A stretch of DNA of 64,000 nucleotides from Macrostomum lignano (GCA_002269645.1 NIVC01001970.1:1-64000); one strand, 5' to 3'. Numbered from the stretch's first letter, positions 10,301 to 35,194 are shown. Translations and numbers: made by a program. The notes: generated by a model from the sequence alone, not told the origin.

Positions 10301-13300
10301 TCCAGCTCTTCTTTGTAGCGCATTGTCGAGTCCGATGTCTGCAGCATCTCACAGACGCCCATGTCCTCCACATCCTGTTTCGCTCGAACGGAGCCGACCA
10401 TGACCGAAGTCTCGAGGAAGGATGCGCACTCTCTTACTTCAAGCTCTTCCTTGTAGCGTACCGACCCGACTGATGTCTGCAGCATCTCACAGACGCCCAT
10501 GTCCTCCACATCCTGTTTCGCTCGAACGGAGCCGACCATGACCGAAGTCTCGAGGAAGGATGCGCACTCTCTTACTTCAAGCTCTTCCTTGTAGCGTACC
10601 GACCCGACTGATGTCTGCAGCATCTCACAGACGCCCATGTCCTCCACATCCTGTTTCGCTCGAACGGAGCCGACCATGAAGGATGTCTCAAGGAACGAAG
10701 CGCATTCTCTCACTTCTAGCTCTTCTTTGTAGCGCATTGTCGAGTCCGATGTCTGCAGCATCTCACAGACGCCCATGTCCTCCACATCCTGTTTCGCTCG
10801 AACGGAGCCGACCATGACCGAAGTCTCGAGGAAGGATGCGCACTCTCTTACTTCAAGCTCTTCCTTGTAGCGTACCGACCCGACTGATGTCTGCAGCATC
10901 TCACAGACGCCCATGTCCTCCACATCCTGTTTCGCTCGAACGGAGCCGACCATGAAGGATGTCTCAAGGAACGAAGCGCATTCTCTCACTTCTAGCTCTT
11001 CTTTGTAGCGCATTGTCGAGTCCGATGTCTGCAGCATCTCACAGACGCCCATGCCTCTACATCCTGTTTCGCTCGAACGGAGCCGACCATGACCGAAGTC
11101 TCGAGGAAGGATGCGCACTCTCTTACTTCAAGCTCTTCCTTGTAGCGTACCGACCCGACTGATGTCTGCAGCATCTCACAGACGCCCATGTCCTCCACAT
11201 CCTGTTTCGCTCGAACGGAGCCGACCATGAAGGATGTCTCAAGGAACGAAGCGCATTCTCTACTTCTAGCTCTTCTTTGTAGCGCATTGTCGAGTCCGAT
11301 GTCTGCAGCATCTCACAGACGCCCATGCCTCACATCCTGTTTCGCTCGAACGGAGCCGACCATGACCGAAGTCTCGAGGAAGGATGCGCACTCTCTTACT
11401 TCAAGCTCTTCTTGTAGCGTACCGACCCGACTGATGTCTGCAGCATCTCACAGACGCCCATGTCCTCCACATCCTGTTTCGCTCGAACGGAGCCGACCAT
11501 GACCGAAGTCTCGAGGAAGGATGCGCACTCTCTTACTTCAAGCTCTTCCTTGTAGCGTACCGACCCGACTGATGTCTGCAGCATCTCACAGACGCCCATG
11601 TCCTCCACATCCTGTTTCGCTCGAACGGAGCCGACCATGAAGGATGTCTCAAGGAACGAAGCGCATTCTCTCACTTCTAGCTCTTCTTTGTAGCGCATTG
11701 TCGAGTCCGATGTCTGCAGCATCTCACAGACGCCCATGTCCTCCACATCCTGTTTCGCTCGAACGGAGCCGACCATGACCGAAGTCTCGAGGAAGGATGC
11801 GCACTCTCTTACTTCAAGCTCTTCCTTGTAGCGTACCGACCCGACTGATGTCTGCAGCATCTCACAGACGCCCATGTCCTCCACATCCTGTTTCGCTCGA
11901 ACGGAGCCGACCATGAAGGATGTCTCAAGGAACGAAGCGCATTCTCTCACTTCTAGCTCTTCTTTGTAGCGCATTGTCGAGTCCGATGTCTGCAGCATCT
12001 CACAGACGCCCATGTCCTCCACATCCTGTTTCGCTCGAACGGAGCCGACCATGACCGAAGTCTCGAGGAAGGATGCGCACTCTCTTACTTCAAGCTCTTC
12101 CTTGTAGCGTACCGACCCGACTGATGTCTGCAGCATCTCACAGACGCCCATGTCCTCCACATCCTGTTTCGCTCGAACGGAGCCGACCATGAAGGATGTC
12201 TCAAGGAACGAAGCGCATTCTCTCACTTCTAGCTCTTCTTTGTAGCGCATTGTCGAGTCCGATGTCTGCAGCATCTCACAGACGCCCATGTCCTCCACAT
12301 CCTGTTTCGCTCGAACGGAGCCGACCATGACCGAAGTCTCGAGGAAGGATGCGCACTCTCTTACTTCAAGCTCTTCCTTGTAGCGTACCGACCCGACTGA
12401 TGTCTGCAGCATCTCACAGACGCCCATGTCCTCCACATCCTGTTTCGCTCGAACGGAGCCGACCATGACCGAAGTCTCGAGGAAGGATGCGCACTCTCTT
12501 ACTTCAAGCTCTTCTTGTAGCGTACCGACCCGACTGATGTCTGCAGCATCTCACAGACGCCCATGTCCTCCACATCCTGTTTCGCTCGAACGGAGCCGAC
12601 CATGAAGGATGTCTCAAGGAACGAAGCGCATTCTCTCACTTCTAGCTCTTCTTTGTAGCGCATTGTCGAGTCCGATGTCTGCAGCATCTCACAGACGCCC
12701 ATGTCCTCCACATCCTGTTTCGCTCGAACGGAGCCGACCATGACCGAAGTCTCGAGGAAGATGCGCACTCTCTTACTTCAAGCTCTTCCTTGTAGCGTAC
12801 CGACCCGACTGATGTCTGCAGCATCTCACAGACGCCCATGTCCTCCACATCCTGTTTCGCTCGAACGGAGCCGACCATGAAGGATGTCTCAAGGAACGAA
12901 GCGCATTCTCTCACTTCTAGCTCTTCTTTGTAGCGCATTGTCGAGTCCGATGTCTGCAGCATCTCACAGACGCCCATGCCTCCACATCTGTTTCGCTCGA
13001 ACGGAGCCGACCATGACCGAAGTCTCGAGGAAGGATGCGCACTCTCTTACTTCAAGCTCTTCCTTGTAGCGTACCGACCCGACTGATGTCTGCAGCATCT
13101 CACAGACGCCCATGTCCTCCACATCCTGTTTCGCTCGAACGGAGCCGACCATGAAGGATGTCTCAAGGAACGAAGCGCATTCTCTCACTTCTAGCTCTTC
13201 TTTGTAGCGCATTGTCGAGTCCGATGTCTGCAGCATCTCACAGACGCCCATGCCTCTACATCTGTTTCGCTCGAACGGAGCCGACCATGACCGAAGTCTC

Positions 13301-16300
13301 GAGGAAGGATGCGCACTCTCTTACTTCAAGCTCTTCCTTGTAGCGTACCGACCCGACTGATGTCTGCAGCATCTCACAGACGCCCATGTCCTCCACATCC
13401 TGTTTCGCTCGAACGGAGCCGACCATGAAGGATGTCTCAAGGAACGAAGCGCATTCTCTCACTTCTAGCTCTTCTTTGTAGCGCATTGTCGAGTCCGATG
13501 TCTGCAGCATCTCACAGACGCCCATGCCTCTACATCTGTTTCGCTCGAACGGAGCCGACCATGACCGAAGTCTCGAGGAAGGATGCGCACTCTCTTACTT
13601 CAAGCTCTTCCTTGTAGCGTACCGACCCGACTGATGTCTGCAGCATCTCACAGACGCCCATGTCCTCCACATCCTGTTTCGCTCGAACGGAGCCGACCAT
13701 GAAGGATGTCTCAAGGAACGAAGCGCATTCTCTTACTTCTAGCTCTTCTTTGTAGCGCATTGTCGAGTCCGATGTCTGCAGCATCTCACAGACGCCCATG
13801 CCTCCACATCCTGTTTCGCTCGAACGGAGCCGACCATGACGAAGTCTCGAGGAAGGATGCGCACTCTCTTACTTCAAGCTCTTCCTTGTAGCGTACCGAC
13901 CCGACTGATGTCTGCAGCATCTCACAGACGCCCATGTCCTCCACATCCTGTTTCGCTCGAACGGAGCCGACCATGAAGGATGTCTCAAGGAACGAAGCGC
14001 ATTCTCTCACTTCTAGCTCTTCTTTGTAGCGCATTGTCGAGTCCGATGTCTGCAGCATCTCACAGACGCCCATGTCCTCCACATCCTGTTTCGCTCGAAC
14101 GGAGCCGACCATGACCGAAGTCTCGAGGAAGGATGCGCACTCTCTTACTTCAAGCTCTTCCTTGTAGCGTACCGACCCGACTGATGTCTGCAGCATCTCA
14201 CAGACGCCCATGTCCTCCACATCCTGTTTCGCTCGAACGGAGCCGACCATGACCGAAGTCTCGAGGAAGGATGCGCACTCTCTTACTTCAAGCTCTTCCT
14301 TGTAGCGTACCGACCCGACTGATGTCTGCAGCATCTCACAGACGCCCATGTCCTCCACATCCTGTTTCGCTCGAACGGAGCCGACCATGACCGAAGTCTC
14401 GAGGAAGGATGCGCACTCTCTTACTTCAAGCTCTTCCTTGTAGCGTACCGACCCGACTGATGTCTGCAGCATCTCACAGACGCCCATGTCCTCCACATCC
14501 TGTTTCGCTCGAACGGAGCCGACCATGAAGGATGTCTCAAGGAACGAAGCGCATTCTCTCACTTCTAGCTCTTCTTTGTAGCGCATTGTCGAGTCCGATG
14601 TCTGCAGCATCTCACAGACGCCCATGCCTCTACATCTGTTTCGCTCGAACGGAGCCGACCATGACCGAAGTCTCGAGGAAGGATGCGCACTCTCTTACTT
14701 CAAGCTCTTCCTTGTAGCGTACCGACCCGACTGATGTCTGCAGCATCTCACAGACGCCCATGTCCTCCACATCCTGTTTCGCTCGAACGGAGCCGACCAT
14801 GAAGGATGTCTCAAGGAACGAAGCGCATTCTCTCACTTCTAGCTCTTCTTTGTAGCGCATTGTCGAGTCCGATGTCTGCAGCATCTCACAGACGCCCATG
14901 CCGTCTACTTCTTGTTTCGCTCGAACGGAGCCGACCATGACCGAAGTCTCGAGGAAGGATGCGCACTCTCTTACTTCAAGCTCTTCCTTGTAGCGTACCG
15001 ACCCGACTGATGTCTGCAGCATCTCACAGACGCCCATGTCCTCCACATCCTGTTTCGCTCGAACGGAGCCGACCATGAAGGATGTCTCAAGGAACGAAGC
15101 GCATTCTCTCACTTCTAGCTCTTCTTTGTAGCGCATTGTCGAGTCCGATGTCTGCAGCATCTCACAGACGCCCATGCCGTCTACATCTGTTTCGCTCGAA
15201 CGGAGCCGACCATGACCGAAGTCTCGAGGAAGGATGCGCACTCTCTTACTTCAAGCTCTTCCTTGTAGCGTACCGACCCGACTGATGTCTGCAGCATCTC
15301 ACAGACGCCCATGTCCTCCACATCCTGTTTCGCTCGAACGGAGCCGACCATGACCGAAGTCTCGAGGAAGGATGCGCACTCTCTTACTTCAAGCTCTTCT
15401 TGTAGCGTACCGACCGACTGATGTCTGCAGCATCTCACAGACGCCCATGTCCTCCACATCCTGTTTCGCTCGAACGGAGCCGACCATGAAGGATGTCTCA
15501 AGGAACGAAGCGCATTCTCTCACTTCTAGCTCTTCTTTGTAGCGCATTGTCGAGTCCGATGTCTGCAGCATCTCACAGACGCCCATGCCTCTACTTCTGT
15601 TTCGCTCGAACGGAGCCGACCATGACCGAAGTCTCGAGGAAGGATGCGCACTCTCTTACTTCAAGCTCTTCCTTGTAGCGTACCGACCCGACTGATGTCT
15701 GCAGCATCTCACAGACGCCCATGCCGTCCTACTTCTGTTTCGCTCGAACGGAGCCGACCATGACCGAAGTCTCGAGGAAGGATGCGCACTCTCTTACTTC
15801 AAGCTCTTCTTGTAGCGTACCGACCGACTGATGTCTGCAGCATCTCACAGACGCCCATGTCCTCCACATCCTGTTTCGCTCGAACGGAGCCGACCATGAA
15901 GGATGTCTCAAGGAACGAAGCGCACTCTCTTACTTCTAGCTCTTCTTTGTAGCGCATTGTCGAGTCCGATGTCTGCAGCATCTCACAGACGCCCATGTCC
16001 TCCACATCCTGTTTCGCTCGAACGGAGCCGACCATGAAGGATGTCTCAAGGAACGAAGCGCATTCTCTCACTTCTAGCTCTTCTTTGTAGCGCATTGTCG
16101 AGTCCGATGTCTGCAGCATCTCACAGACGCCCATGCCGTCTACTTCTGTTTCGCTCGAACGGAGCCGACCATGACCGAAGTCTCGAGGAAGGATGCGCAC
16201 TCTCTTACTTCAAGCTCTTCCTTGTAGCGTACCGACCCGACTGATGTCTGCAGCATCTCACAGACGCCCATGTCCTCCACATCCTGTTTCGCTCGAACGG

Positions 16301-19300
16301 AGCCGACCATGAAGGATGTCTCAAGGAACGAAGCGCATTCTCTCACTTCTAGCTCTTCTTTGTAGCGCATTGTCGAGTCCGATGTCTGCAGCATCTCACA
16401 GACGCCCATGCCTCTACATCTGTTTCGCTCGAACGGAGCCGACCATGACCGAAGTCTCGAGGAAGGATGCGCACTCTCTTACTTCAAGCTCTTCCTTGTA
16501 GCGTACCGACCCGACTGATGTCTGCAGCATCTCACAGACGCCCATGTCCTCCACATCCTGTTTCGCTCGAACGGAGCCGACCATGAAGGATGTCTCAAGG
16601 AACGAAGCGCATTCTCTCACTTCTAGCTCTTCTTTGTAGCGCATTGTCGAGTCCGATGTCTGCAGCATCTCACAGACGCCCATGCCGTCACTTCTGTTTC
16701 GCTCGAACGGAGCCGACCATGACGAAGTCTCGAGGAAGGATGCGCACTCTCTTACTTCAAGCTCTTCCTTGTAGCGTACCGACCCGACTGATGTCTGCAG
16801 CATCTCACAGACACCCATGTCCTCCACATCCTGTTTCGCTCGAACGGAGCCGACCATGAAGGATGTCTCAAGGAACGAAGCGCATTCTCTCACTTCTAGC
16901 TCTTCTTTGTAGCGCATTGTCGAGTCCGATGTCTGCAGCATCTCACAGACGCCCATGTCCTCCACATCCTGTTTCGCTCGAACGGAGCCGACCATGACCG
17001 AAGTCTCGAGGAAGGATGCGCACTCTCTTACTTCAAGCTCTTCCTTGTAGCGTACCGACCCGACTGATGTCTGCAGCATCTCACAGACGCCCATGTCCTC
17101 CACATCCTGTTTCGCTCGAACGGAGCCGACCATGAAGGATGTCTCAAGGAACGAAGCGCACTCTCTTACTTCTAGCTCTTCTTTGTAGCGCATTGTCGAG
17201 TCCGATGTCTGCAGCATCTCACAGACGCCCATGTCCTCCACATCCTGTTTCGCTCGAACGGAGCCGACCATGACCGAAGTCTCGAGGAAGGATGCGCACT
17301 CTCTTACTTCAAGCTCTTCCTTGTAGCGTACCGACCCGACTGATGTCTGCAGCATCTCACAGACGCCCATGTCCTCCACATCCTGTTTCGCTCGAACGGA
17401 GCCGACCATGACCGAAGTCTCGAGGAAGGATGCGCACTCTCTTACTTCAAGCTCTTCCTTGTAGCGTACCGACCCGACTGATGTCTGCAGCATCTCACAG
17501 ACGCCCATGTCCTCCACATCCTGTTTCGCTCGAACGGAGCCGACCATGAAGGATGTCTCAAGGAACGAAGCGCATTCTCTCACTTCTAGCTCTTCTTTGT
17601 AGCGCATTGTCGAGTCCGATGTCTGCAGCATCTCACAGAAGCCCATGCCGTCTACTTCTTGTTTCGCTCGAACGGAGCCGACCATGACCGAAGTCTCGAG
17701 GAAGGATGCGCACTCTCTTACTTCAAGCTCTTCCTTGTAGCGTACCGACTTGACTGATGTCTGCAGCATCTCACAGACGCCCATGTCCTCCACATCCTGT
17801 TTCGCTCGAACGGAGCCGACCATGAAGGATGTCTCAAGGAACGAAGCGCATTCTCTCACTTCTAGCTCTTCTTTGTAGCGCATTGTCGAGTCCGATGTCT
17901 GCAGCATCTCACAGAAGCCCATGCCGTCTACTTCTTGTTTCGCTCGAACGGAGCCGACCATGATCGAAGTCTCGAGGAAGGATGCGCACTCTCTTACTTC
18001 AAGCTCTTCCTTGTAGCGTACCGACCCGACTGATGTCTGCAGCATCTCACAGACGCCCATGTCCTCCACATCCTGTTTCGCTCGAACGGAGCCGACCATG
18101 AAGGATGTCTCAAGGAACGAAGCGCATTCTCTCACTTCTAGCTCTTCTTTGTAGCGCATTGTCGAGTCCGATGTCTGCAGCATCTCACAGAAGCCCATGC
18201 CGTCTACTTCTTGTTTCGCTCGAACGGAGCCGACCATGACCGAAGTCTCGAGGAAGGATGCGCACTCTCTTACTTCAAGCTCTTCCTTGTAGCGTACCGA
18301 CCCGACTGATGTCTGCAGCATCTCACAGACGCCCATGTCCTCCACATCCTGTTTCGCTCGAACGGAGCCGACCATGAAGGATGTCTCAAGGAACGAAGCG
18401 CATTCTCTCACTTCTAGCTCTTCTTTGTAGCGCATTGTCGAGTCCGATGTCTGCAGCATCTCACAGAAGCCCATGCCGTCTACTTCTTGTTTCGCTCGAA
18501 CGGAGCCGACCATGACCGAAGTCTCGAGGAAGGATGCGCACTCTCTTACTTCAAGCTCTTCCTTGTAGCGTACCGACCCGACTGATGTCTGCAGCATCTC
18601 ACAGACGCCCATGTCCTCCACATCCTGTTTCGCTCGAACGGAGCCGACCATGAAGGATGTCTCAAGGAACGAAGCGCATTCTCTCACTTCTAGCTCTTCT
18701 TTGTAGCGCATTGTCGAGTCCGATGTCTGCAGCATCTCACAGAAGCCCATGCCGTCTACTTCTTGTTTCGCTCGAACGGAGCCGACCATGACCGAAGTCT
18801 CGAGGAAGGATGCGCACTCTCTTACTTCAAGCTCTTCCTTGTAGCGTACCGACTTGACTGATGTCTGCAGCATCTCACAGACGCCCATGTCCTCCACATC
18901 CTGTTTCGCTCGAACGGAGCCGACCATGAAGGATGTCTCAAGGAACGAAGCGCATTCTCTCACTTCTAGCTCTTCTTTGTAGCGCATTGTCGAGTCCGAT
19001 GTCTGCAGCATCTCACAGAAGCCCATGCCGTCTACTTCTTGTTTCGCTCGAACGGAGCCGACCATGATCGAAGTCTCGAGGAAGGATGCGCACTCTCTTA
19101 CTTCAAGCTCTTCCTTGTAGCGTACCGACCCGACTGATGTCTGCAGCATCTCACAGACGCCCATGTCCTCCACATCCTGTTTCGCTCGAACGGAGCCGAC
19201 CATGAAGGATGTCTCAAGGAACGAAGCGCATTCTCTCACTTCTAGCTCTTCTTTGTAGCGCATTGTCGTGTCTGATGTCTCCAACATCTCACAGAAGCCC

Positions 19301-22300
19301 ATGTCGTTCACACTCTGGCTTACTTGAATGGACTCACTCAAGACAGTCGTTTCCAGGAATGAGGCGCATTCGTTGAGCTTCGGCTCTTCCTTGTAGCGTA
19401 CCGACCCGTCTAATGTGGGCAGCATCTCACAGACGCCCATTTCATCGACTGGCTGTTCCACTTGAACTGAAGCCTCCTTCACAAGTGTCTCTACTCGGAT
19501 AGCGCCTTCCAGGAATGTGGTCTCGGAGAATGTGAAGCACTCGTCGAGTTTCGGCACCTCCTTGTAGCGTACCGACCCGTCTGATGTGAGCAGCATCTCA
19601 CAGACGCCCATTCCATCGACTGGCTGTTCCACTTGAACTGAAGCCTCCTTCACAAGTGTCTCTACTCTGATAGCGCCTTCCAGGAATGTGGTCTCGGAGA
19701 ATGTGAAGCACTCGTTGAGTTTCGGCTCTTCCTTGTAGCGTACCGACCCGTCTGATGTGAGCAGCATCTCACAGACGCCCATTCCATCAACTGGCTGTTC
19801 CACTTGAACTGAAGCCTCCTTCACAAGTGTCTCTACTCGGATAGCGCCTTCCAGGAATGTGGTCTCGGAGAATGTAAAGCACTCGTCGAGTTTCGGCTCC
19901 TCCTTGTAGCGTATGGACCCGTCTGATGTGAGCAGCATCTCACAGACGCCCATGTCGTCTATTTCTTGTTTCACTCGAACAGATCCCATCATGACGGATG
20001 TCTCGAGGAACGATGCGCAGTCTCTCACTTCTAGCTCTTCTTTGTAGCGCATTGTCGTGTCTGATGTCTCCAACATCTCACAGAAGCCCATGTCGTTCAC
20101 ACTCTGGCTTACTCGAATGGACTCACTCAAGACAGTCGTTTCCAGGAATGAGGCGCATTCGTTGAGCTTCGGCTCTTCCTTGTAGCGTACCGACCCGTCT
20201 AATGTGGGCAGCATCTCACAGACGCCCATTTCATCGACTGGCTGTTCCACTTGAACTGAAGCCTCCTTCACAAGTGTCTCTACTCGGATAGCGCCTTCCA
20301 GGAATGTGGTCTCGGAGAATGTGAAGCACTCGTTGAGTTTCGGCTCTTCCTTGTAGCGTACCGACCCGTCTGATGTGAGCAGCATCTCACAGACGCCCAT
20401 TCCATCGACTGGCTGTTCCACTTGAACTGAAGCCTCCTTCACAAGTGTCTCTACTCGGATAGCGCCTTCCAGGAATGTGGTCTCGGAGAATGTGAAGCAC
20501 TCGTTGAGTTTCGGCTCTTCCTTGTAGCGTACCGACCCGTCTGATGTGAGCAGCATCTCACAGACGCCCATTTCATCGACTGGCTGTTCCACTTGAACTG
20601 AAGCCTCCTTCACAAGTGTCTCTACTCGGATAGCGCCTTCCAGGAATGTGGTCTCGGAGAATGTGAAGCACTCGTCGAGTTTCGGCTCCTCCTTGTAGCG
20701 TATGGACCCGTCTGATGTGAGCAGCATCTCACAGACGCCCATTCCATCGACTGGCTGTTCCACTTGAACTGAAGCCTCCTTCACAAGTGTCTCTACTCGG
20801 ATAGCGCCTTCCAGGAATGTGGTCTCGGAGAATGTGAAGCACTCGTCGAGTTTCGGCTCCTCCTTGTAGCGTATGGACCCGTCTGATGTGAGCAGCATCT
20901 CACAGACGCCCATGTCGTCTATTTCTTGTTTCACTCGAACAGATCCCATCATGACGGATGTCTCGAGGAACGATGCGCAGTCTCTCACTTCTAGCTCTTC
21001 TTTGTAGCGCATTGTCGTGTCTGATGTCTCCAACATCTCACAGAAGCCCATGTCGTTCACACTCTGGCTTACTCGAATGGACTCACTCAAGACAGTCGTT
21101 TCCAGGAATGAGGCGCATTCGTTGAGCTTCGGCTCTTCCTTGTAGCGTACCGACCCGTCTAATGTGGGCAGCATCTCACAGACGCCCATTCCATCGACTG
21201 GCTGTTCCACTTGAACTGAAGCCTCCTTCACAAGTGTCTCTACTCGGATAGCGCCTTCCAGGAATGTGGTCTCGGAGAATGTGAAGCACTCGTTGAGTTT
21301 CGGCTCTTCCTTGTAGCGTACCGACCCGTCTGATGTGAGCAGCATCTCACAGACGCCCATTCCATCGACTGGCTGTTCCACTTGAACTGAAGCCTCCTTC
21401 ACAAGTGTCTCTACTCTGATAGCGCCTTCCAGGAATGTGGTCTCGGAGAATGTGAAGCACTCGTTGAGTTTAGGCTCTTCCTTGTAGCGTACTGACCCGT
21501 CTGATGTGAGCAGCATCTCACAGACGCCCATTCCATCGACTGGCTGTTCCACTTGAACTGAAGCCTCCTTCACAAGTGTCTCTACTCGGATAGCGCCTTC
21601 CAGGAATGTGGTCTCGGAGAATGTAAAGCACTCGTCGAGTTTCGGCTCCTCCTTGTAGCGTATGGACCCGTCTGATGTGAGCAGCATCTCACAGACGCCC
21701 ATTCCATCGACTGGCTGTTCCACTTGAACTGAAGCCTCCTTCACAAGTGTCTCTACTCGGATAGCGCCTTCCAGGAATGTGGTCTCGGAGAATGTAAAGC
21801 ACTCGTCGAGTTTCGGCTCCTCCTTGTAGCGTATGGACCCGTCTGATGTGAGCAGCATCTCACAGACGCCCATGTCGTCTATTTCTTGTTTCACTCGAAC
21901 AGATCCCATCATGACGGATGTCTCGAGGAACGATGCGCAGTCTCTCACTTCTAGCTCTTCTTTGTAGCGCATTGTCGTGTCTGATTTCTCCAACATCTCA
22001 CAGAAGCCCATGTCGTTCACACTCTGGCTTACTCGAATGGACTCACTCAAGACAGTCGTTTCCAGGAATGAGGCGCATTCGTTGAGCTTCGGCTCTTCCT
22101 TGTAGCGTACCGACCCGTCTAATGTGGGCAGCATCTCACAGACGCCCATTTCATCGACTGGCTGTTCCACTTGAACTGAAGCCTCCTTCACAAGTGTCTC
22201 TACTCGGATAGCGCCTTCCAGGAATGTGGTCTCGGAGAATGTGAAGCACTCGTTGAGTTTCGGCTCTTCCTTGTAGCGTACCGACCCGTCTGATGTGAGC

Positions 22301-25300
22301 AGCATCTCACAGACGCCCATTCCATCGACTGGCTGTTCCACTTGAACTGAAGCCTCCTTCACAAGTGTCTCTACTCTGATAGCGCCTTCCAGGAATGTGG
22401 TCTCGGAGAATGTGAAGCACTCGTTGAGTTTAGGCTCTTCCTTGTAGCGTACTGACCCGTCTGATGTGAGCAGCATCTCACAGACGCCCATTCCATCGAC
22501 TGGCTGTTCCACTTGAACTGAAGCCTCCTTCACAAGTGTCTCTACTCGGATAGCGCCTTCCAGGAATGTGGTCTCGGAGAATGTAAAGCACTCGTCGAGT
22601 TTCGGCTCCTCCTTGTAGCGTATGGACCCGTCTGATGTGAGCAGCATCTCACAGACGCCCATGTCGTCTATTTCTTGTTTCACTCGAACAGATCCCATCA
22701 TGACGGATGTCTCGAGGAACGATGCGCAGTCTCTCACTTCTAGCTCTTCTTTGTAGCGCATTGTCGTGTCTGATTTCTCCAACATCTCACAGAAGCCCAT
22801 GTCGTTCACACTCTGGCTTACTCGAATGGACTCACTCAAGACAGTCGTTTCCAGGAATGAGGCGCATTCGTTGAGCTTCGGCTCTTCCTTGTAGCGTACC
22901 GACCCGTCTAATGTGGGCAGCATCTCACAGACGCCCATTTCATCGACTGGCTGTTCCACTTGAACTGAAGCCTCCTTCACAAGTGTCTCTACTCGGATAG
23001 CGCCTTCCAGGAATGTGGTCTCGGAGAATGTGAAGCACTCGTTGAGTTTCGGCTCTTCCTTGTAGCGTACCGACCCGTCTGATGTGAGCAGCATCTCACA
23101 GACGCCCATTCCATCGACTGGCTGTTCCACTTGAACTGAAGCCTCCTTCACAAGTGTCTCTACTCTGATAGCGCCTTCCAGGAATGTGGTCTCGGAGAAT
23201 GTGAAGCACTCGTTGAGTTTAGGCTCTTCCTTGTAGCGTACTGACCCGTCTGATTTGAGCAGCATCTCACAGACGCCCATTCCATCGACTGGCTGTTCCA
23301 CTTGAACTGAAGCCTCCTTCACAAGTGTCTCTACTCGGATAGCGCCTTCCAGGAATGTGGTCTCGGAGAATGTGAAGCACTCGTCGAGTTTCGGCTCCTC
23401 CTTGTAGCGTATGGACCCGTCTGATGTGAGCAGCATCTCACAGACGCCCATGTCGTCTATTTCTTGTTTCACTCGAACAGATCCCATCATGACGGATGTC
23501 TCGAGGAACGATGCGCAGTCTCTCACTTCTAGCTCTTCTTTGTAGCGCATTGTCGTGTCTGATGTCTCCAACATCTCACAGAAGCCCATGTCGTTCACAC
23601 TCTGGCTTACTCGAATGGACTCACTCAAGACAGTCGTTTCCAGGAATGAGGCGCATTCGTTGAGCTTCGGCTCTTCCTTGTAGCGTACCGACCCGTCTAA
23701 TGTGGGCAGCATCTCACAGACGCCCATTTCATCGACTGGCTGTTCCACTTGAACTGAAGCCTCCTTCACAAGTGTCTCTACTCTGATAGCGCCTTCCAGG
23801 AATGTGGTCTCGGAGAATGTGAAGCACTCGTTGAGTTTCGGCTCTTCCTTGTAGCGTACCGACCCGTCTGATGTGAGCAGCATCTCACAGACGCCCATTC
23901 CATCGACTGGCTGTTCCACTTGAACTGAAGCCTCCTTCACAAGTGTCTCTACTCTGATAGCGCCTTCCAGGAATGTGGTCTCGGAGAATGTGAAGCACTC
24001 GTTGAGTTTAGGCTCTTCCTTGTAGCGTACTGACCCGTCTGATGTGAGCAGCATCTCACAGACGCCCATTCCATCGACTGGCTGTTCCACTTGAACTGAA
24101 GCCTCCTTCACAAGTGTCTCTACTCGGATAGCGCCTTCCAGGAATGTGGTCTCGGAGAATGTAAAGCACTCGTCGAGTTTCGGCTCCTCCTTGTAGCGTA
24201 TGGACCCGTCTGATGTGAGCAGCATCTCACAGACGCCCATGTCGTCTATTTCTTGTTTCACTCGAACAGATCCCATCATGACGGATGTCTCGAGGAACGA
24301 TGCGCAGTCTCTCACTTCTAGCTCTTCTTTGTAGCGCATTGTCGTGTCTGATTTCTCCAACATCTCACAGAAGCCCATGTCGTTCACACTCTGGCTTACT
24401 CGAATGGACTCACTCAAGACAGTCGTTTCCAGGAATGAGGCGCATTCGTTGAGCTTCGGCTCTTCCTTGTAGCGTACCGACCCGTCTAATGTGGGCAGCA
24501 TCTCACAGACGCCCATTTCATCGACTGGCTGTTCCACTTGAACTGAAGCCTCCTTCACAAGTGTCTCTACTCGGATAGCGCCTTCCAGGAATGTGGTCTC
24601 GGAGAATGTGAAGCACTCGTTGAGTTTCGGCTCTTCCTTGTAGCGTACCGACCCGTCTGATGTGAGCAGCATCTCACAGACGCCCATTCCATCGACTGGC
24701 TGTTCCACTTGAACTGAAGCCTCCTTCACAAGTGTCTCTACTCTGATAGCGCCTTCCAGGAATGTGGTCTCGGAGAATGTGAAGCACTCGTTGAGTTTAG
24801 GCTCTTCCTTGTAGCGTACTGACCCGTCTGATGTGAGCAGCATCTCACAGACGCCCATTCCATCGACTGGCTGTTCCACTTGAACTGAAGCCTCCTTCAC
24901 AAGTGTCTCTACTCGGATAGCGCCTTCCAGGAATGTGGTCTCGGAGAATGTAAAGCACTCGTCGAGTTTCGGCTCCTCCTTGTAGCGTATGGACCCGTCT
25001 GATGTGAGCAGCATCTCACAGACGCCCATTCCATCGACTGGCTGTTCCACTTGAACTGAAGCCTCCTTCACAAGTGTCTCTACTCTGATAGCGCCTTCCA
25101 GGAATGTGGTCTCGGAGAATGTGAAGCACTCGTTGAGTTTAGGCTCTTCCTTGTAGCGTACTGACCCGTCTGATTTGAGCAGCATCTCACAGACGCCCAT
25201 TCCATCGACTGGCTGTTCCACTTGAACTGAAGCCTCCTTCACAAGTGTCTCTACTCGGATAGCGCCTTCCAGGAATGTGGTCTCGGAGAATGTGAAGCAC

Positions 25301-28300
25301 TCGTTGAGTTTCGGCTCCTCCTTGTAGCGTATGGACCCGTCTGATGTGAGCAGCATCTCACAGACGCCCATGTCGTCTATTTCTTGTTTCACTCGAACAG
25401 ATCCCATCATGACGGATGTCTCGAGGAACGATGCGCAGTCTCTCACTTCTAGCTCTTCTTTGTAGCGCATTGTCGTGTCTGATGTCTCCAACATCTCACA
25501 GAAGCCCATGTCGTTCACACTCTGGCTTACTCGAATGGACTCACTCAAGACAGTCGTTTCCAGGAATGAGGCGCATTCGTTGAGCTTCGGCTCTTCCTTG
25601 TAGCGTACCGACCCGTCTAATGTGGGCAGCATCTCACAGACGCCCATTTCATCGACTGGCTGTTCCACTTGAACTGAAGCCTCCTTCACAAGTGTCTCTA
25701 CTCTGATAGCGCCTTCCAGGAATGTGGTCTCGGAGAATGTGAAGCACTCGTTGAGTTTCGGCTCTTCCTTGTAGCGTACTGACCCGTCTGATTTGAGCAG
25801 CATCTCACAGACGCCCATTCCATCGACTGGCTGTTCCACTTGAACTGAAGCCTCCTTCACAAGTGTCTCTACTCGGATAGCGCCTTCCAGGAATGTGGTC
25901 TCGGAGAATGTGAAGCACTCGTTGAGTTTCGGCTCCTCCTTGTAGCGTATGGACCCGTCTGATGTGAGCAGCATCTCACAGACGCCCATGTCGTCTATTT
26001 CTTGTTTCACTCGAACAGATCCCATCATGACGGATGTCTCGAGGAACGATGCGCAGTCTCTCACTTCTAGCTCTTCTTTGTAGCGCATTGTCGTGTCTGA
26101 TGTCTCCAACATCTCACAGAAGCCCATGTCGTTCACACTCTGGCTTACTCGAATGGACTCACTCAAGACAGTCGTTTCCAGGAATGAGGCGCATTCGTTG
26201 AGCTTCGGCTCTTCCTTGTAGCGTACCGACCCGTCTAATGTGGGCAGCATCTCACAGACGCCCATTTCATCGACTGGCTGTTCCACTTGAACTGAAGCCT
26301 CCTTCACAAGTGTCTCTACTCTGATAGCGCCTTCCAGGAATGTGGTCTCGGAGAATGTGAAGCACTCGTTGAGTTTCGGCTCTTCCTTGTAGCGTACCGA
26401 CCCGTCTGATGTGAGCAGCATCTCACAGACGCCCATTCCATCGACTGGCTGTTCCACTTGAACTGAAGCCTCCTTCACAAGTGTCTCTACTCTGATAGCG
26501 CCTTCCAGGAATGTGGTCTCGGAGAATGTGAAGCACTCGTTTAGTTTCGGCTCTTGCTTGTAACGTACCGACCCGTCTGATGTGAGCAGCGTCTCAGAAA
26601 CGCCCATCTCATCCACGGTTGGCTCTGCTCGCACACCAGTCGTTTTGTGTATAAGCTCAAGCGAGCTGGCGCACTCTTCGACCTGCGGTTCGTCCTTGAA
26701 TCTTACGTTTTCGCTCGCGCTTAGTACCTCGTTGTATACGCCAATCTCTCCGACTTCTTGATTGACTTGCACAGAAGCTTCTTGGACTTTAGTTTTCGTA
26801 CGAACGAAGCCTGACTTGACCAACAACTCAAGCGAGCTGGCGCACTCTTCGACCTTCGGTTCATCCTTGAATCTCATGGCACCATGAGAGAACATAAATT
26901 GCTCACAGACGCCCATCTCATCTACGGTCGGCTGTGCTCGTACACCAGCATTTTCGTGCATAAATTCAAGCGAGCTGTTGCACTGTAGAATTTTCGGCAT
27001 GTTACTGAATTTTACGTTGCTGTTAACTGCTTTGATTTTTTCCACTTCTTCAGCAAATCCCAGTTCGCTGACGACTTGTTTGGCTGTTACAGAAACGTCT
27101 TTCGTTGTCATCTGTGCTTTGGTGTTGCTTTCCTTATAAGATTTTTCTAAGTGGGAGAAACACTCTCGAATTTTTGTCTCCTCTTTGCATAAAACAGACG
27201 CATCTTCGGTTGAAATTTCCATTTCAACGCTCATGCACGCAAGTTTTGGGCTTACGGAGATGCTGCTTTCGCCTGTGAAAGAATCTGTTTGAAGTGCGGC
27301 TTCACTAAAGTGGTTCTCATAGTGCACTTCGCAAGTGCTGAGTTTTTCCTGAGTTTTTTCTTCAGTTTTGCAATTTACACTGCTATCCGCAAATTCCAGG
27401 TCAAATGAACACTCAAAATCTGAAATTTGGTTTTCGATTACGCAGTTGACTCCCTGTTCGGCAGTGACTAGCTCCTGAGACAGGTGCATATATTTTATTT
27501 GTTGCTTAACAACTAAAACCGATTCCTCTGTTTCACAGGTCGTTTTTACGCAGGCATCTTGAACTTCTACTTTTCTCGGTGGTTGAGTTGCCATGAGCTT
27601 TTTACGGTTTGTCTCCTCTTCGATTTTTATCTCGATGTCGATGTCTACGCTTTGTCTTCCGAATCTCTCATCCACCTGTTCAGCAACATAAAGGGAGTCT
27701 GTGTCAGTTTGCCTAACCCGGCTTTCGTACTTAATGAGTTTCTCTTCCGTCTCTACTGTTTGGCCAGACTGATCTGTTTGAGTCTCTGAGTCGCTGCTTT
27801 CTATTTCTAGACAGAACAGATCATTCTGCACAGTATAGTGCAGGTGGCAGGCAATCTTGCTCTCCGCCATCACGCTCTGCTTATCGCAACCTGTGCTGGC
27901 TATTGGTATCTGCGCAGTTTGACAGCCAGCCTCGCGCGTGACTGCTTGGGTTTTTCCAACAGCAGCACCGGTGCCGGAGCCTGAGCTTGAAGTCGCATTC
28001 GCTTCGCTTTCATTGGAGCTCGAAATTGCCGTTGCAAGCTTTCGCGTTTCCGAGTACTCTAACTTTTCTTTGACGTCAACTCTCAGCTGGGATCGGCCCT
28101 CAGATGCCGATGCAGCAGCGTACGCGGACTGAGAGTGCACTATCGGACTCGGAATATTTTCGTGCAGGTAGCGTTTTACTTCGGACTCGTACTCTTGAAT
28201 GTAGTTGTACACAGCCTGACGAAATACTGGATCCTCAATATCCTGAGTAGAGTTCTGTCGATATTCCGAATAACCCGCCTGCACAGATTTCGAAGTGGGA

Positions 28301-28602
28301 GACAGGAGCCCCACCGGACTCCTTGGGGGCGGTTTGGTCTGCGTGCTCTCGCTCATTGACGCACGTCTGAGCTGCTGGCGGACCTGATCCTTGGCGACTG
28401 TCAGATCCCGGATGCTGGTTAGGTCGACTGGCCTGGACTTGAGAAGGGGATACCACTCAGACTCGCGACTGTCGCGAAGGCTGCCTCTTCTACCTTCGAA
28501 TAGAAGATCGGTGGTGTCCATTCTCTGCGAGTTCGTTACCGATTGACCGTCTGTCTGCGAGCTCCCGGTGACTTGCACTGCTAGTGACTGGCTTTCACGC
28601 TG
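4312..28602 (-). CDS. Giant terminal exon (~24.3 kb, ~8,100 aa) of a plakin-family gene: unique TQT/VQV-motif region, then 57/46-aa higher-order repeats, then 46-aa A/B array, then short C-terminus ending KIFVTPFD*
   Basis: Acceptor CTACAG|CAGCGT at 28603/28602, phase 0, matching the upstream exon. Open for >4,000 codons (ORF 16414-28674). Beyond that the same peptide continues through many single-base frameshifts to the unique tail and stop at 4312-4314. Confidence 0.8.
4560..19270 (-). repeat. Coding tandem array of 138-bp (46-aa) units, mostly alternating A (SDSTM...TSF) and B (SVGSV...TSV) as a 276-bp dimer, ~105 units
   Basis: Period 138 bp (e.g. cccatgtcc at 9531 and 9669). B unit MGVCEMLQTSVGSVRYKEELEVRECASFLETSVMVGSVRAKQDVED. 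Copy number estimated from length. Confidence 0.95.
19200..26600 (-). repeat. Coding higher-order repeat block: nine HORs of (171 bp)n + 138 + 138 bp, n=2-5, 29 copies of the 57-aa unit
   Basis: Marker AATGTGGGC (MLPTLDG unit) at ~19413, 20201, 21161, 22121, 22911, 23700, 24489, 25620 and 26237. Spacings of ~789, 960, 960, 789, 789, 789, 1131 and 618 equal n x 171 + 276. Confidence 0.9.
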
Positions 28603-28687
28603 CTGTAGATCAATGGGTAGGTAATAAAAACAGTTTTTGATGTGCAAAACTGATCCAAATTTAACTTGAGTCAAATTTTCTGCTTAC

Positions 28688-28811
28688 TTGGACGCTTTGA
28701 TTAACTGTTGTTGATTTTCTGACCTCTGTCAAACGAGTTGAGTAGAGACTCCAATCCTGCATCCGGGTCTGCAGATCTTCCATTTGTTTGCCACTTTCTT
28801 CCTGCATTTTC
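28688..28811 (-). CDS. Plakin gene exon 8 (KMQEESGKQMEDLQTRMQDWSLYSTRLTEVRKSTTVNQSVQ)
   Basis: Acceptor TTTTGCAG|G (phase 2), donor CAA|GTAAGC (phase 0). An 85-nt intron leads to the giant exon. Helical, spectrin-like peptide. Confidence 0.8.
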
Positions 28812-28851
28812 CTGCAAAATTCATTGAGAAGTTACTTATAAGAGCGTATAT

Positions 28852-29548
28852 AGAGCGTTCTCAGGAACAGACTGGAGCGTGCTCACAAACAGACTGGAGC
28901 ATGCTCACAAACAGACTGGAGCGTTCTCAGAAACAGACTGGAGCGTGCTCACAAACAGACTGGAGCATGCTCACAAACAGACTGGAGCGTGCTCACAAAC
29001 AGACTGGAGCATGCTCACAAACAGACTGGAGCATGCTCACAAACAGACTGGAGCGTGCTCACAAACAGACTGGAGCGTGATCGCAAACAGACTGGAGCAT
29101 GCTCACAAACAGACTGGAGCATGCTCACAAACAGACTGGAGCATGCTCACAAACAGACTGGAGCATGCTCACAAACAGACTGGAGCATGCTCACAAACAG
29201 ACTGGAGCGTGCTCACAAACAGACTGGAGCGTGATCACAAACAGACTGGAGCATGCTCACAAACAGACTGGAGCATGCTCACAAACAGACTGGAGCATGC
29301 TCACAAACAGACTGGAGCATGCTCACAAATAGACTGAAGCGTGCTCACAAACAGACTGGAGCGTGCTCACAAACAGACTGGAGCATGCTCACAAACAGAC
29401 TGGAGCATGCTCACAAACAGACTGGAGCATGCTCACAAACAGACTGGAGCGTGCTCACAAACAGACTGGAGCGTGATCACAAACAGACTGGAGCGTGATC
29501 ACAAACAGACTGGAGCGTGATCACAAACAGACTGGAGCGTGATCACAA
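28852..29548. repeat. 22-bp minisatellite (AAACAGACTGGAGCATGCTCAC)n, ~31 copies, intronic
   Basis: Direct tandem periodicity. Many units contain the palindrome GAGCATGCTC. Confidence 0.95.
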
Positions 29549-29585
29549 CAACACAAGAGTTCCACTAGAGTTGGCCCGAACTCAC

Positions 29586-29769
29586 TGTAGGACAGAAATG
29601 GCGGTCATCATCTGAGCCGACTCTTCCGTTAGCCCGCTGTGGTCGCGCTTGAAAAATTCCAACTGCTCGTTGAGGCATTTCCAGTTTCGCATGTGCTCAA
29701 GCAGCTTCTCAAGCAAAGATCGAAGCAGAACGGCGTCGCTCGAGCGAACCGTCGAACTCTGGTCCGGCG
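29586..29769 (-). CDS. Plakin gene exon 7 (PDQSSTVRSSDAVLLRSLLEKLLEHMRNWKCLNEQLEFFKRDHSGLTEESAQMMTAISVLQ)
   Basis: Acceptor TTCATCATTGCAG|CG (phase 1), donor CA|GTGAGT (phase 2). Both phases match the neighbouring exons. Confidence 0.75.
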
Positions 29770-29984
29770 CTGCAATGATGAAACGGTGTGGGGGCGTTTC
29801 AGCAAGCAAGTCGAAAAAACTCACCGTTAACTTCTGATAGCTCAAAACTCGACAGCATTGAAGAGAATTAGAATTTCAAGATTATAAAACTTAAAGTTTG
29901 CGAAAGTGACCAGAAAGTTTTCTCGACTATGTGATTTTTAATACCTGGACATTGAATTCTAAAGCCCGTGTAAAAGTCTCCAGT

Positions 29985-30685
29985 GTAAAAGCCCCTGGTG
30001 CTAAAGCCCGTGGTGCTAAATCCCCTGGTGCTAAAGCCCCTGGTGCTGAAGCCCGTGGTGCTAAAGCCCGTGGTGCTAAAGCCCCTGGTGCTAAAGCCCG
30101 TGGTGCTAAAGCCCGTGGTGCTAAAGCCCCTGGTGCTAAAGCCCGTGGTGCTAAAGCCCGTGGTGCTAAAGCCCCTGGTGCTAAAGCCCGTGGTGCTAAA
30201 GCCCGTGGTGCTAAAGCCCCTGGTGCTAAAGCCCGTGGTGCTAAAGCCCCTGGTGCTAAAGCCCCTGGTGCTAAAGCCCCTGGTGCTAAAGCCCCTGGTG
30301 CTTAAGCCCCTGGTGCTAAAGCCCGTGGTGCTAAAGCCCCTAGTGCTAAAGCCCCTGGTACTAAAGCCCCTGGTGCTAAAGCCCGTGGTGCTAAAGCCCC
30401 TGGTGCTAAAGCCCGTGGTGCTAAAGCCCCTGGTGCTAAAGCCCGTGGTGCTAAAGCTCGTGGTGCTAAATCCCCTGGTGCTAAAGCCCCTGGTGCTGAA
30501 GCCCGTGGTGCTAAAGCCCGTGGTGCTAAAGCCCCTGGTGCTAAAGCCCGTGGTGCTAAAGCCCGTGGTGCTAAAGCCCCTGGTGCTAAAGCCCGTGGTG
30601 CTAAAGCCCGTGGTGCTAAAGCCCCTGGTGCTAAAGCCCGTGGTGCTAAAGCCCGTGGTGCTAAAGCCCGTGGTGCCAAAGCACC
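29985..30685. repeat. 15-bp minisatellite (GCCC[C/G]TGGTGCTAAA)n, ~46 copies, intronic
   Basis: Direct tandem periodicity with two interspersed variants. Confidence 0.95.
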
Positions 30686-30801
30686 TGGAACTGGAGTTTG
30701 ATTGAATTCTCAGATTGAATTACTGGAGTCCTTTGGTACCTTAAAGCCCATACCCGTTAGGTAGATTATTTGAAACGTAATTATCAGCATGAATAACTCA
30801 C

Positions 30802-30952
30802 AACTGAGCACGAGTCGGTCTCGAACGGCTTGAACCGCTTCAACCAGCTGACTGCGCTGCTGGCCCTCGTCTCCCAGTAGGCCGTCACTGAGGGCTTCCT
30901 CCAGCTGGGTGAGAAAGTTCAGGAATGTCAGCTGAGCTGATGGCTCCGCAGT
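30802..30952 (-). CDS. Plakin gene exon 6 (TAEPSAQLTFLNFLTQLEEALSDGLLGDEGQQRSQLVEAVQAVRDRLVLS)
   Basis: Acceptor CCTTATAG|ACT (phase 0), donor T|GTGAGT (phase 1). GC-rich amphipathic-helix-like coding stretch. Confidence 0.75.
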
Positions 30953-31053
30953 CTATAAGGGTGCAATGAAGAGCTTACTGTCTGATAAAATCTTATTATA
31001 GTTAAAAAGAAACTACGTTTGAAACAGATTTTAGTCAGCGTTAAACAGCTCAC

Positions 31054-31165
31054 CACGGTGTCATTGCTGAGCAGCTTCTGCAAATAGTCGGAGTAGAACT
31101 GCGTCAGCCACTGCTGAACTTCGGTTAGCAGACTTGCCCACGTGTTGCGCAGCTTGCGTCGAATT
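31054..31165 (-). CDS. Plakin gene exon 5 (IRRKLRNTWASLLTEVQQWLTQFYSDYLQKLLSNDTV)
   Basis: Acceptor CTTTTCTAG|A (phase 2), donor GTG|GTGAGC (phase 0). Corresponds to the post-SH3 helix with conserved Trp in plakin domains. Confidence 0.8.
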
Positions 31166-31373
31166 CTAGAAAAGTTTTTTGTGTGTTAGGAACTTTTTAA
31201 TTTAAAAAAGGTACTACGGAAGTGTAGAGGTCATTACGTTAAAAGTAATAAAAATCGTTTGTACAATAATTATCCCGACGAAAATCATTGCTCCAGTAGC
31301 TAGCCAAAAAATAATAACCTAACCGTAAATACCGGAAAACTTCTGTTTCTTAGAAAACAACAACAACAACAAC

Positions 31374-32391
31374 CGACCCGACCCGATCCGGGATCAAGCC
31401 AAGCTGGAATCCGAGCAGATTCTGCATTGCCCACGCCGGGAATCGAACTGGATCAGAAACAAGCCCTGGCTTCCGAGAATCGAGGATCGGGTCACCCTTT
31501 GCGAGCACCTGACTCAGCCGGTCTCCAGGAACGATCCGCCAGAGACCAGGCGGTCGGCGACGGAAGACACCATTAAATCATGGGGCGACCGCAAGATCCA
31601 CTATTTCACCGACGGATCTGCATCCGAAGGAACGGAGAATGGAGGGGCAGCCTGTGTGGCAGTCGCCCCTACTTCGGGCCAGGTGGTTTGGATTGAGGGA
31701 GCTGCTACCGGGCGCTGGTGTGGCTCGTTCCAAGCTGAACTCTCAGCTCTGCACCTCGCCCTGGACCACATCCTTGAGACTAAGCAGGACTCTGCCCTGA
31801 TCCTCACCGACAGCCAATCGGCCATTGCGGCGCTCAGAGGTCGGCAGCACTCCCTGAACCCTCTGCTCGAGTCGCTCAAGCGCAAGCTGACGCAGGTGGA
31901 GAGCCACGCCGACGTGGTCCTGCAGTGGATCCCAGGTCATTCTGGGACTCCCGGTAACGAGAGAGCCGACACCGAGGCAAAGAACGCCTGTCTGCTCCCC
32001 AGGACCTTCTAGGGATCGACATCGAGGCCGCCCGAAGCCGCATACGCCGTCTCATCAACTATAAGCCTCTCCTGAATGACCGGCTGAAGCGGGTCTACAG
32101 CAAGACCCCCTCGATGCCTGCTCGCCCTCGCGCGCTTCAGGTTTCCATAGCTCAAATGCGTGCCGGTCACGATCCTTCTACGGCGTACTATCAGCACCGA
32201 ATAGGCACTAGGGAGGATAGCAGATGCCTCCGGTGCGACCTCTTAGAAGACAAGGACCACTTCCTCGAATGTCCGGCCCTGGCCGGAGCTCGGCACGCGA
32301 CGGACCTACACCAACTGGAGGACTTGGCCGATGGCGATCTGGTGGCTAGGTTCTTGGACTGCCTGCATAGGCAGCCCTAGACCACCTTCCG
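31374..32391 (+). mobile_element. 5'-truncated non-LTR retrotransposon (I-group-like) with RNase H and C-terminal CCHC
   Basis: YFTDGS...QAELSAL...ILTDSQSA...LQWIPGHSGTPGNERADTEAK (RNase H). After one frameshift near 32000: IAQMRAGH...CLRCDLLEDKDHFLEC. Ends in a (CAA)n tail. Confidence 0.85.
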
Positions 32392-32395
32392 CAAC

Positions 32396-32471
<76 letters not shown>
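32392..32471. repeat. (CAA)~25 microsatellite shared as the 3' tail of two opposed LINEs
   Basis: Directly visible; a shorter CAA run also precedes the left element at ~31357-31373. Confidence 0.95.
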
Positions 32472-33045
32472 AGTACACTGGATAGTCTCCAGTGTCACAG
32501 GGTGCGTCTCAAGGCCAGAGTGCGAACATTGGCCGCTCCGCCGGCAGAGTCCAGGGCGCCGGCGTCAGCCAGCAGGCAGTCGACGAAACGCCGAGTGCGC
32601 GCCTGTCCTCGCCGGTAGGGTGCCTGCAGTGTCAGCAGCAGCACCTCCTGCACCGGCTCTGGGCAGTACGACTCGGCGCGGATGATGTGGCCTGCCAGCT
32701 GGAGTCGCCGACGGCGCAGCAGGTCACTTGGACGGGCCCGGCCGTCGCGGCGATAGAGTGCCGCGTTGGTGACTCGCTCGTCGCCGATCTTGAAGGCGGC
32801 GCGCAGCAGGCCAGCGTGCGCCGCGTCGACTTGATGTTCGAGCGAGTCTGTCAGCGTCCAGGTCTCGGCGTTGTAAAGCAGGCCGGTTTCGACTACCGCC
32901 TGAAACAAAGCCGCCCTCTGGCGGTCCGGAAGGGCCTCAGACTGCAGGACCGCCCTCACAGAGCGGAAGGCAGCCCAGGCAAGCCCGCGGCGACGACGCA
33001 GATCCTCGCGTACGTCGGGAACCAGACCACCGAGGTAGACGAACT
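32472..33045 (-). mobile_element. 5'-truncated RTE-clade LINE (RT end/thumb and C-terminus)
   Basis: FVYLGGLV...DLRRRRGLAWAAFR...LFQAVVETGLLYNAETWTLT...LRRRRLQLAGHIIRA, typical of RTE ORF ends. Stop at 32495-32497, then a very short 3' UTR and a (TTG)n tail. Confidence 0.85.
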
Positions 33046-33169
33046 AACTCTTAGAAAGTTATTTCAAAAACTTCTAAACACTACATTTAATGTAGCAGCG
33101 CCCTGGGCCTCCAATAATTTTTATCCACCCTCCCTTTCTCCTCTGTGATACCTGTGCCCCGAGATGAGC

Positions 33170-33505
33170 CATTGGGATGACTCATTGGGATGACTCATTG
33201 GGATGACTTATTGGGATGACTCATTGGGATGACTCTTTGGGATGACTAATTGGGATGACTTATTGGGATGACTTATTGGGATGACTCATTGGGATGACTC
33301 ATTGGGATGACTCATTGGGATGACTCATTGGGATGACTCATTGGGATGACTCATTGGGATGACTCATTGGGATGACTCATTGGGATGACTCATTGGGATG
33401 ACTCATTGGGATGACTCATTGGGATGACTCATTGGGATGACTCATTGGGATGACTCATTGGGATGACTCATTGGGATGACTCATTGGGATGACTCATTGG
33501 GATGA
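33170..33505. repeat. 13-bp minisatellite (CATTGGGATGACT)n, ~26 copies
   Basis: Direct tandem periodicity; most unit junctions read TGACTCA. Confidence 0.95.
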
Positions 33506-34939: not shown

Positions 34940-34957
34940 CTGGTGGGAGAGAATAGA

Positions 34958-35172: not shown

Positions 35173-35194
35173 AGTGAACATCGGAACATGCATA

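Follow-up and report, generated by a model that had tools for sequence, protein, structure and literature searches.

The stretch analyzed here, called the window below, comprises 64,000 nucleotides from the flatworm Macrostomum lignano (GCA_002269645.1 NIVC01001970.1:1-64000). Two paralogs lie in tandem on its minus strand: gene A, which is located upstream, and gene B, which bears an array of KEASVQVE motifs and is fully covered. Unless stated otherwise, coordinates refer to the window and features are located on its minus strand. The original prediction was that the KEASVQVE copies, together with a dense set of motifs N-terminal to them, could form an unusually high-valency ladder of binding sites for the dynein light chain LC8 (DYNLL), which would dimerize and stiffen a disordered tail.

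Gene B encodes a plakin-domain protein. Its N-terminal exons (28688-37577) specify a plakin domain that consists of spectrin repeats plus SH3_10. When the annotated M. lignano proteins P0001 and P0002 (BOX15_Mlig031564g3) were used in tblastn, eight exon blocks were obtained (37577-37173, 36721-36485, 35913-35734, 34996-34784, 31164-31048, 31018-30803, 29785-29585 and 28813-28688). The encoded N-terminus matches Pfam SH3_10 (PF17902) at E=7.8e-12, above the family cut-off, and matches desmoplakin (3r6n, E=1.2e-9) and plectin (3pe0, E=4e-9) in the PDB. The last intron (28603-28687, GTAAGC...CTACAG, as read from the sequence) precedes a giant exon, and the resulting junction (SVQ followed by QRESQ) agrees with P0001 and P0002. 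The uninterrupted part of the giant exon (16414-28602) was delimited by open reading frame (ORF), translation and splice acceptor, and extends from QRESQ for 4,062 codons until the frame meets its first stop. According to the ORF listing, the corresponding minus-strand ORF (16414-28674) has 4,086 codons without a stop.

The product of gene B is a cytolinker of the plakin-domain type, the central array of which is an orphan confined to this lineage. As such it is expected to be cytoplasmic, a compartment compatible with LC8. The N-terminal plakin domain, with an SH3 embedded in spectrin repeats, is shared with desmoplakin and plectin. Gene B differs from the plakin family in that it has no detected plakin repeats and that its 23/46/57-aa repeat is unmatched outside M. 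lignano. After the plakin domain, Pfam searches detected no Plectin repeats, coiled-coil rod, calponin-homology, EF-hand or GAR domain. For the linker, the repeats and the C-terminal tail they returned sub-threshold noise only, with nothing below E=0.1 for the tail, and a PDB search with a 1,535-aa stretch and the unit profile gave no match to the repeats at E<=10. AHNAK-type giants combine a small N-terminal domain with one huge exon that codes for short beta-prone repeats. Gene B shares with them the giant exon and charged repeats that alternate hydrophobic and polar residues, without a confident predicted fold; it differs in unit length and N-terminal domain, and no sequence similarity was detected. 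A very large single repeat-array exon downstream of the plakin domain is also found in Drosophila Shot, where it encodes plakin repeats (PMC2173965).

In protein sets of 5.8 billion and 1.84 billion entries, homologs were found only within M. lignano. They comprise, besides P0001 and P0002, the proteins P0003 (Mlig000934g7), P0004 and P0009 (Mlig017584g1), P0005 (Mlig024865g2) and P0010. A phmmer search of the 1.84 billion representatives returned the M. lignano paralogs and one spurious match at E=5e-4, and word-indexed searches with protein, paralog and unit profile queries returned M. lignano proteins only. Neither Macrostomum plakins nor the locus tags Mlig031564, Mlig000934, Mlig017584 and Mlig024865 turned up in a literature search, nor did expression or localization data.

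The giant exon starts with a non-repeat linker of 562 aa (26917-28602), which is rich in S, T, Q and E and bears TQT/QTD-type motifs in its translation. A higher-order repeat block follows (19441-26916), in which 30 units of 57 aa (B) occur in runs of one to five with 46-aa units (a) between them. The protein as a whole was parsed into 30 B and 37 a units in the order BaBBaaBBaaBBBBBaaBBBaaBBBaaBBBaaBBBBaaBBBBaaBBB, after which 46-aa units stand alone. At the DNA level, Tandem Repeats Finder reports alternating blocks of 171-bp and 138-bp units over 19366-26607, with 95-98% matches, and an array of the 46-aa type only with a 138-bp period (4556-19440), the frame of which is repeatedly broken below 16414. 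The minus-strand ORF contains exactly 29 KEASVQVE, one QEASVQVN, 30 EASVQV and two TQT. The predicted number of 29 KEASVQVE copies (the first at 26452-26475, the last at 19456-19479) was thus exact, but they are not strictly tandem, as their runs are split by one or two 46-aa units. Compared to the 46-aa units, all 30 of the 57-aa units carry 11 extra residues, as had been proposed; KEASVQVE is present in 29 of them, and the first, diverged unit has QEASVQVN instead (26761-26784), with codons that differ synonymously from those of the other units.

The origin of the 57-aa unit can be traced within the array. Its last 33 nt, encoding ASVQVEQPVDG, match the ends of 46-aa units (GSVRVKQEIDD or GSVRAKQDVED) at 16-20 of 33 positions, and the preceding 33 nt (GAIRVETLVKE) match these ends at 15-19 of 33, compared to 8.5 +/- 2.6 (maximum 17) for all other offsets, which served as the null. 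Because both terminal segments resemble the end of the 46-aa unit, the 57-aa unit is a 46-aa unit with its terminal 11 codons duplicated in tandem. A short element, [DE][GA][SA][VI][RQ][VY][KE], occurs two to three times per unit, and in the 57-aa unit takes the forms DGSVRYKE, EGAIRVET and EASVQVEQ. VQV is the Q variant of the [GS][VI]R[VA]KQ element of the repeat, and the window contains 34 [VI]Q[VA] versus 266 [VI]R[VA]. In the unit alignment, AAGIQVKQ from a paralog lines up with GSVRVKQ. Since the unit is built from variants of one short pattern, KEASVQVE is best regarded as the repeat element with Gln in place of Arg. One 46-aa unit (19312-19335) reads LSESIQVSQ rather than the usual LSESIRVSQ, an independent single-base change from Arg to Gln at the position equivalent to VQV in KEASVQVE. 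A distant paralog has plain 23-aa repeats (GSGCFRETSYNESRVRFKEEIAVT).

The 29 KEASVQVE units have only 17 variable sites among 171 nt, none of them in codons 40-54. As the copies are near-identical, they are to be counted as a single evolutionary event, the amplification of one motif. Near-identical blocks and a variant that can be traced to a local duplication mark the block as a recently amplified higher-order tandem repeat, as judged from its sequence.

The motifs were scored with a log-odds position-specific scoring matrix (PSSM), applied leave-one-out and derived from the LC8Pred training set, which comprises 79 binders and 32 non-binders that contain an anchor (Table S4, PMC6607443). The anchor of an LC8 site consists of Gln at position 0, T, V or I at -1 and T or V at +1; it is present as VQV in KEASVQVE and QEASVQVN and as TQT in SDSETQTD and SESTQTK. 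Asp, Glu or Pro is preferred at +2, Lys at -5 and a polar residue (D or S) at -4 are favorable, a large or basic residue is preferred over a small one at -3, where the latter is disfavored, a bulky aromatic is unfavorable at -2, and RQT is a non-binder (PMC6607443). KEASVQVE has the favorable Lys at -5 and Glu at +2, and shares its VQVE core with QSVGVQVE, a proven site of DLGAP1/GKAP, while QEASVQVN shares its VQVN core with ATMIN ISTGVQVN. These belong to an xQV class that also includes DLGAP1/GKAP LSIGIQVD, nNOS KDTGIQVD and DNMT3A KDLGIQVD (PMC6607443). All five xQV binders of Table S4 have Gly at -2, with T, V, I or L at -3, whereas KEASVQVE has Ser and Ala, respectively, the latter from the disfavored class. 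KEASVQVE reaches 7.1 bits, which ranks it at the 3rd percentile among the binders and at the 25th among the non-binders with an anchor; QEASVQVN, with 5.2 bits, lies below every binder. The flank-only log-ratio of binders to non-binders for KEASVQVE is 2.96, equal to that of the median binder; its low total is mainly due to the rarer VQV anchor. KEASVQVE does not clearly outscore shuffled versions of the unit in which it lies (P=0.074), and the core pattern [TVI]Q[TV][DEP] turns up in 2.2% of shuffled units. We consider KEASVQVE a weak, non-canonical candidate LC8 site.

The motifs that had been listed N-terminal to the array are all present in the giant exon, but only one of them is strong. 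SDSETQTD (27772-27795) scores 17.4 bits, ranking at the 89th percentile among the binders and exceeding each of the 32 non-binders; it is close to the proven ATMIN site SDTETQTE and stands out from shuffles of the linker (P=0.0015). We predict that this is a good LC8 candidate site, and the only such site here. The next best is SSQTD (28549-28563), which as VTGSSQTD attains 11.1 bits, slightly under the lower quartile of binders (11.4). SESTQTK (28333-28353; MSESTQTK, 8.1 bits) has a TQT anchor with poor flanks, its flank-only log-ratio of -4.5 being below every binder and non-binder. EAALQTD (27283-27303; SEAALQTD, 7.8 bits) is at the 8th and EAGCQTA (27913-27933; REAGCQTA, 6.9 bits) at the 3rd percentile of binders, and their LQT and CQT anchors are absent or non-binding in Table S4 (PMC6607443). 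SLAVQVT (28567-28587; QSLAVQVT, 5.1 bits) is below every binder. Collectively, weak motifs of at least 7 bits are enriched in the 562-aa linker (7 observed versus 1.9 expected, P=0.0025). The plakin domains have no LC8-type motif above 8 bits.

SDSETQTD is kept in P0001 and P0002 and absent from the distant paralogs P0004 and P0005. Of the three paralog lineages, two have one strong TQT site in the linker, namely SDSETQTD here and TSCATQTD in P0004 (15.4 bits, P=0.008); in the third, a weak SQT site (VEAASQTD in P0005) is located close to that of P0004. Across the paralogs, these sites are only roughly co-positioned, with TSCATQTD and VEAASQTD in neighboring alignment columns and the sites of the window elsewhere. 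The only linker block conserved across all three lineages is VYNYIQEYESEVKRYLHENIPSPIV (27984-28302, ORF aa 125-230), which has 13 invariant alignment columns and is predicted by AlphaFold2, at low confidence, to be helical.

The spacing of the KEASVQVE copies differs from that of known multivalent LC8 scaffolds. ASCIZ/ATMIN (7-11 sites), Nup159 and KANK1 L2 (15 or more sites) resemble the array in having many candidate sites on one cytoplasmic or nuclear chain, and the valency of the array would be 2-3 times the known maximum. In these scaffolds, however, the sites are unlike in sequence, and the rod-forming clients Nup159 and KANK1 have linkers of 3-5 residues. The sites of the array are identical, and with a motif period of 57 aa there are 49 residues between neighboring motifs, or 141 across a pair of 46-aa units, so that the short linkers of a Nup159/KANK1-type rod are not found. 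The sequence between the motifs is also conserved and fairly hydrophobic, with 37% order-promoting residues and invariant Gly, Arg, Lys, Glu and Cys positions. Because 49-141 conserved residues separate the motifs, a rigid ladder of the known kind is not expected. LC8 binds disordered segments. By charge-hydropathy, the array is marginally on the folded side (+0.024) and the linker at the boundary, whereas the sequence around SDSETQTD falls on the disordered side (-0.09) and is the most disorder-like part of the linker.

Based on these data, we favor the interpretation that a weak LC8-like motif was recently multiplied, along with the repeat that bears it, within a giant plakin-type protein; we assign it a probability somewhat above one half (about 0.55). 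On this interpretation, a basic repeat period of ~23 aa was doubled to 46 aa, tandem duplication of the last 11 codons gave the 57-aa variant, and recent unequal crossing-over amplified runs of 57-aa units plus the 46-aa pair, resulting in 29 near-identical motif copies. Judged from the plakin domain and the overall architecture, the array would most likely provide a cytolinker anchored at junctions with a long structural spacer or a binding platform. SDSETQTD could recruit a single LC8 dimer and help to pair two chains. The array is probably not a rigid LC8 ladder, given that KEASVQVE makes a weak, non-canonical LC8 site and that its copies are too widely spaced; the ladder remains a hypothesis, and a disfavored one. 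The original hypothesis was reasonable for an uncharacterized protein and is partly supported, namely by the one good candidate SDSETQTD, but it is weaker than "29 sites" implies. A likeness of VQVEQPVD to the tau-type VQIVYKPVD was also considered; it was dropped, as it is too short and no Pfam family of microtubule-associated proteins (MAP/tau) was matched.

Several observations weigh against this interpretation. Some come from the paralog locus L001 (NIVC01003798.1), which has an array of ~44 units (16363-23730 in L001); the annotated protein from this locus, P0004, stops early at a 1-bp frameshift. Every unit of L001 has [VI]QV. Its 57-aa units contain VKEASVQV[NH]QPVGA and its 46-aa units (YEAAGIQVKQAVSE) contain AAGIQVK, with a GIQV as in the nNOS/DLGAP1/DNMT3A class but, differing from that class, with Lys at +2. 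The 57-aa units of the two loci are identical at 31 of 57 residues (54%), and EASVQV and R[YF]K[DE]EPK are the two best-conserved blocks. KEASVQV is identical even though four of its seven codons have changed synonymously (AAG/AAA, TCA/TCT, GTT/GTA and GTG/GTC), and EASVQV is also retained in the diverged first unit of the window. Given this identity within an otherwise 54%-identical unit, KEASVQV appears to be under purifying selection rather than homogenized by gene conversion, and its Gln is not obviously needed by a purely structural strand. For units this similar, a conserved stretch as long as this one is only a mild surprise (P about 0.05-0.1, an estimate). In addition, the spacer role is suggested by architecture only, and the PSSM is a simplified stand-in for LC8Pred. 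In KANK1, motifs that individually bind weakly or not at all bind LC8 cooperatively, and scores of the LC8Pred type miss them. AlphaFold2 prediction of six repeat units (BBaaBB) gave a mean pLDDT (predicted local distance difference test) of 26.5, which fits disorder, and the linker gave a mean of 28 with nothing confidently folded; the underlying alignments of close relatives, with 8 and 5 rows, respectively, cannot tell disorder from an orphan fold.

If the selected element is an LC8 site after all, the array would be a genuine multivalent LC8 client, in which the [GS][VI]QV elements are true LC8/DYNLL sites and cooperative dimers pair or cross-link chains and extend the region. This we consider unlikely. 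In its favor are the proven VQVE and VQVN cores, the median-level flanks, the conservation of the motif through synonymous changes, the [VI]QV in all ~44 paralog units, the lack of a predicted fold, the cytoplasmic location and the strong TQT sites in two lineages, and KANK1 provides a precedent for both cooperativity of weak sites and a rod, as LC8 binding turns its disordered linker into one. On the other hand, the total score of KEASVQVE lies inside the non-binder range and not above shuffles, Gly at -2 is replaced and Ala occupies -3, and conserved, hydrophobic spacers of 49-141 residues take the place of the 3-5 found in rods. Moreover, 266 of the 300 homologous elements in the window have Arg, which cannot serve as an anchor. 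With 29 identical sites, out-of-register pairing would be expected, and such pairing or networking would be as likely as a duplex. The original prediction also named chance-level motif scores as a ground for rejection; by that measure, the N-terminal part passes, whereas KEASVQVE does not quite. Candidate peptides are TLVKEASVQVEQP, TLVKEASVQVEQPV and IESSDSETQTDQSG; LEYEAAGIQVKQAV is the candidate peptide from the paralog, and MMGSVRVKQEIDD is a natural Arg-variant.

The purifying selection on KEASVQV could also be explained by a partner other than LC8, for example a component of the cytoskeleton, such as an intermediate-filament protein, or an enzyme that forms cross-links through Gln or Lys, or by strand-to-strand self-association. 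This, too, is an unlikely reading. In favor of a partner of this type, plakins as cytolinkers bind filaments, and both envoplakin and periplakin are substrates of transglutaminase. Within the unit, the local beta-amphipathic moment is highest at EASVQVE (2.9), and AlphaFold2 places strands at ASVQVE and ECFTFSETT, but its confidence is far too low to trust them, and over whole units the hydrophobic periodicity typical of beta-strands does not reach significance (z=0.4-1.7). Searches of Pfam and the PDB identified no partner, fold or homolog.

The 138-bp arrays switch frame every 1-10 units, both in the window (4556-16414 and 45012-59999) and in L001 (18454-21640 of that locus). Among the indels scored in 4600-16545, 48 of 49 are 1-bp deletions, and 37 are within homopolymer runs of 2 or more, a pattern that resembles consensus error of long reads. 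The protein probably continues beyond the stop at 16414, and the product of gene B may exceed 8,000 aa. The gene B array ends abruptly near 4556 with a short, different tail (ERHFVQSELLVTPISSSVGVQCNQPIDS, region 4312-4818), and gene B lacks the tail SARAEVKAKNSSVCVDMSKKV that is common to gene A and L001; this could be due to a truncation, a further exon or an assembly break. A non-functional array, either a decaying pseudogene or a mis-assembled satellite with meaningless motifs, would fit frames that break every few units, the missing C-terminal tail and the absence of expression data from the literature, but is highly improbable in view of 4,086 codons without a stop, the consensus-error signature of the indels and amino acids that are conserved despite synonymous change between paralogs.

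Gene A has an array with a 138-bp period according to Tandem Repeats Finder (43738-64000), which extends past the window edge; within the window, it has only three 57-aa KEASVQVE units (61649-62161). In its C-terminal tail (41971-43737), a Cys-rich part is followed by 13 copies of a 23-aa repeat (VTRREGTALESTDSVSSARAQLG), seen at the DNA level as a 69-bp tandem repeat (42065-42963). The start of this tail also follows the array in L001. The introns of gene B (28866-38509) are full of minisatellites: 22 bp x31 (28866-29548), 15 bp x46 (29988-30682), 13 bp x26 (33170-33505), 19 bp x12 (34949-35174), 14 bp x38 (35198-35721) and 32 bp x24 (37734-38509).

For motif scans in general, the array teaches that copies within a young tandem array are not independent evidence. 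It is tempting to speculate, although we regard it as quite doubtful, that a plakin family of one flatworm lineage has evolved dozens of [GS][VI]QV elements per chain and, by purifying selection, keeps them as low-affinity LC8 sites. If so, LC8 could zip up or cross-link chains of a giant cytolinker through the ~30 elements of gene B, or the ~44 of the paralog, in concert with one strong TQT site of the linker; such a protein would exceed every known LC8 client in valency and would connect LC8 with plakins for the first time. Binding of LC8 to the array would roughly double to triple the known maximum valency and would have LC8 organizing a junctional cytolinker, and the identical, evenly spaced sites would provide a natural test of linker length versus cooperativity. 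Even without LC8, the locus represents an uncharacterized plakin-domain family, with proteins of probably more than 8,000 residues, in a genetically tractable flatworm, with an orphan 23/46/57-aa repeat in which a short element appears to be under selection.

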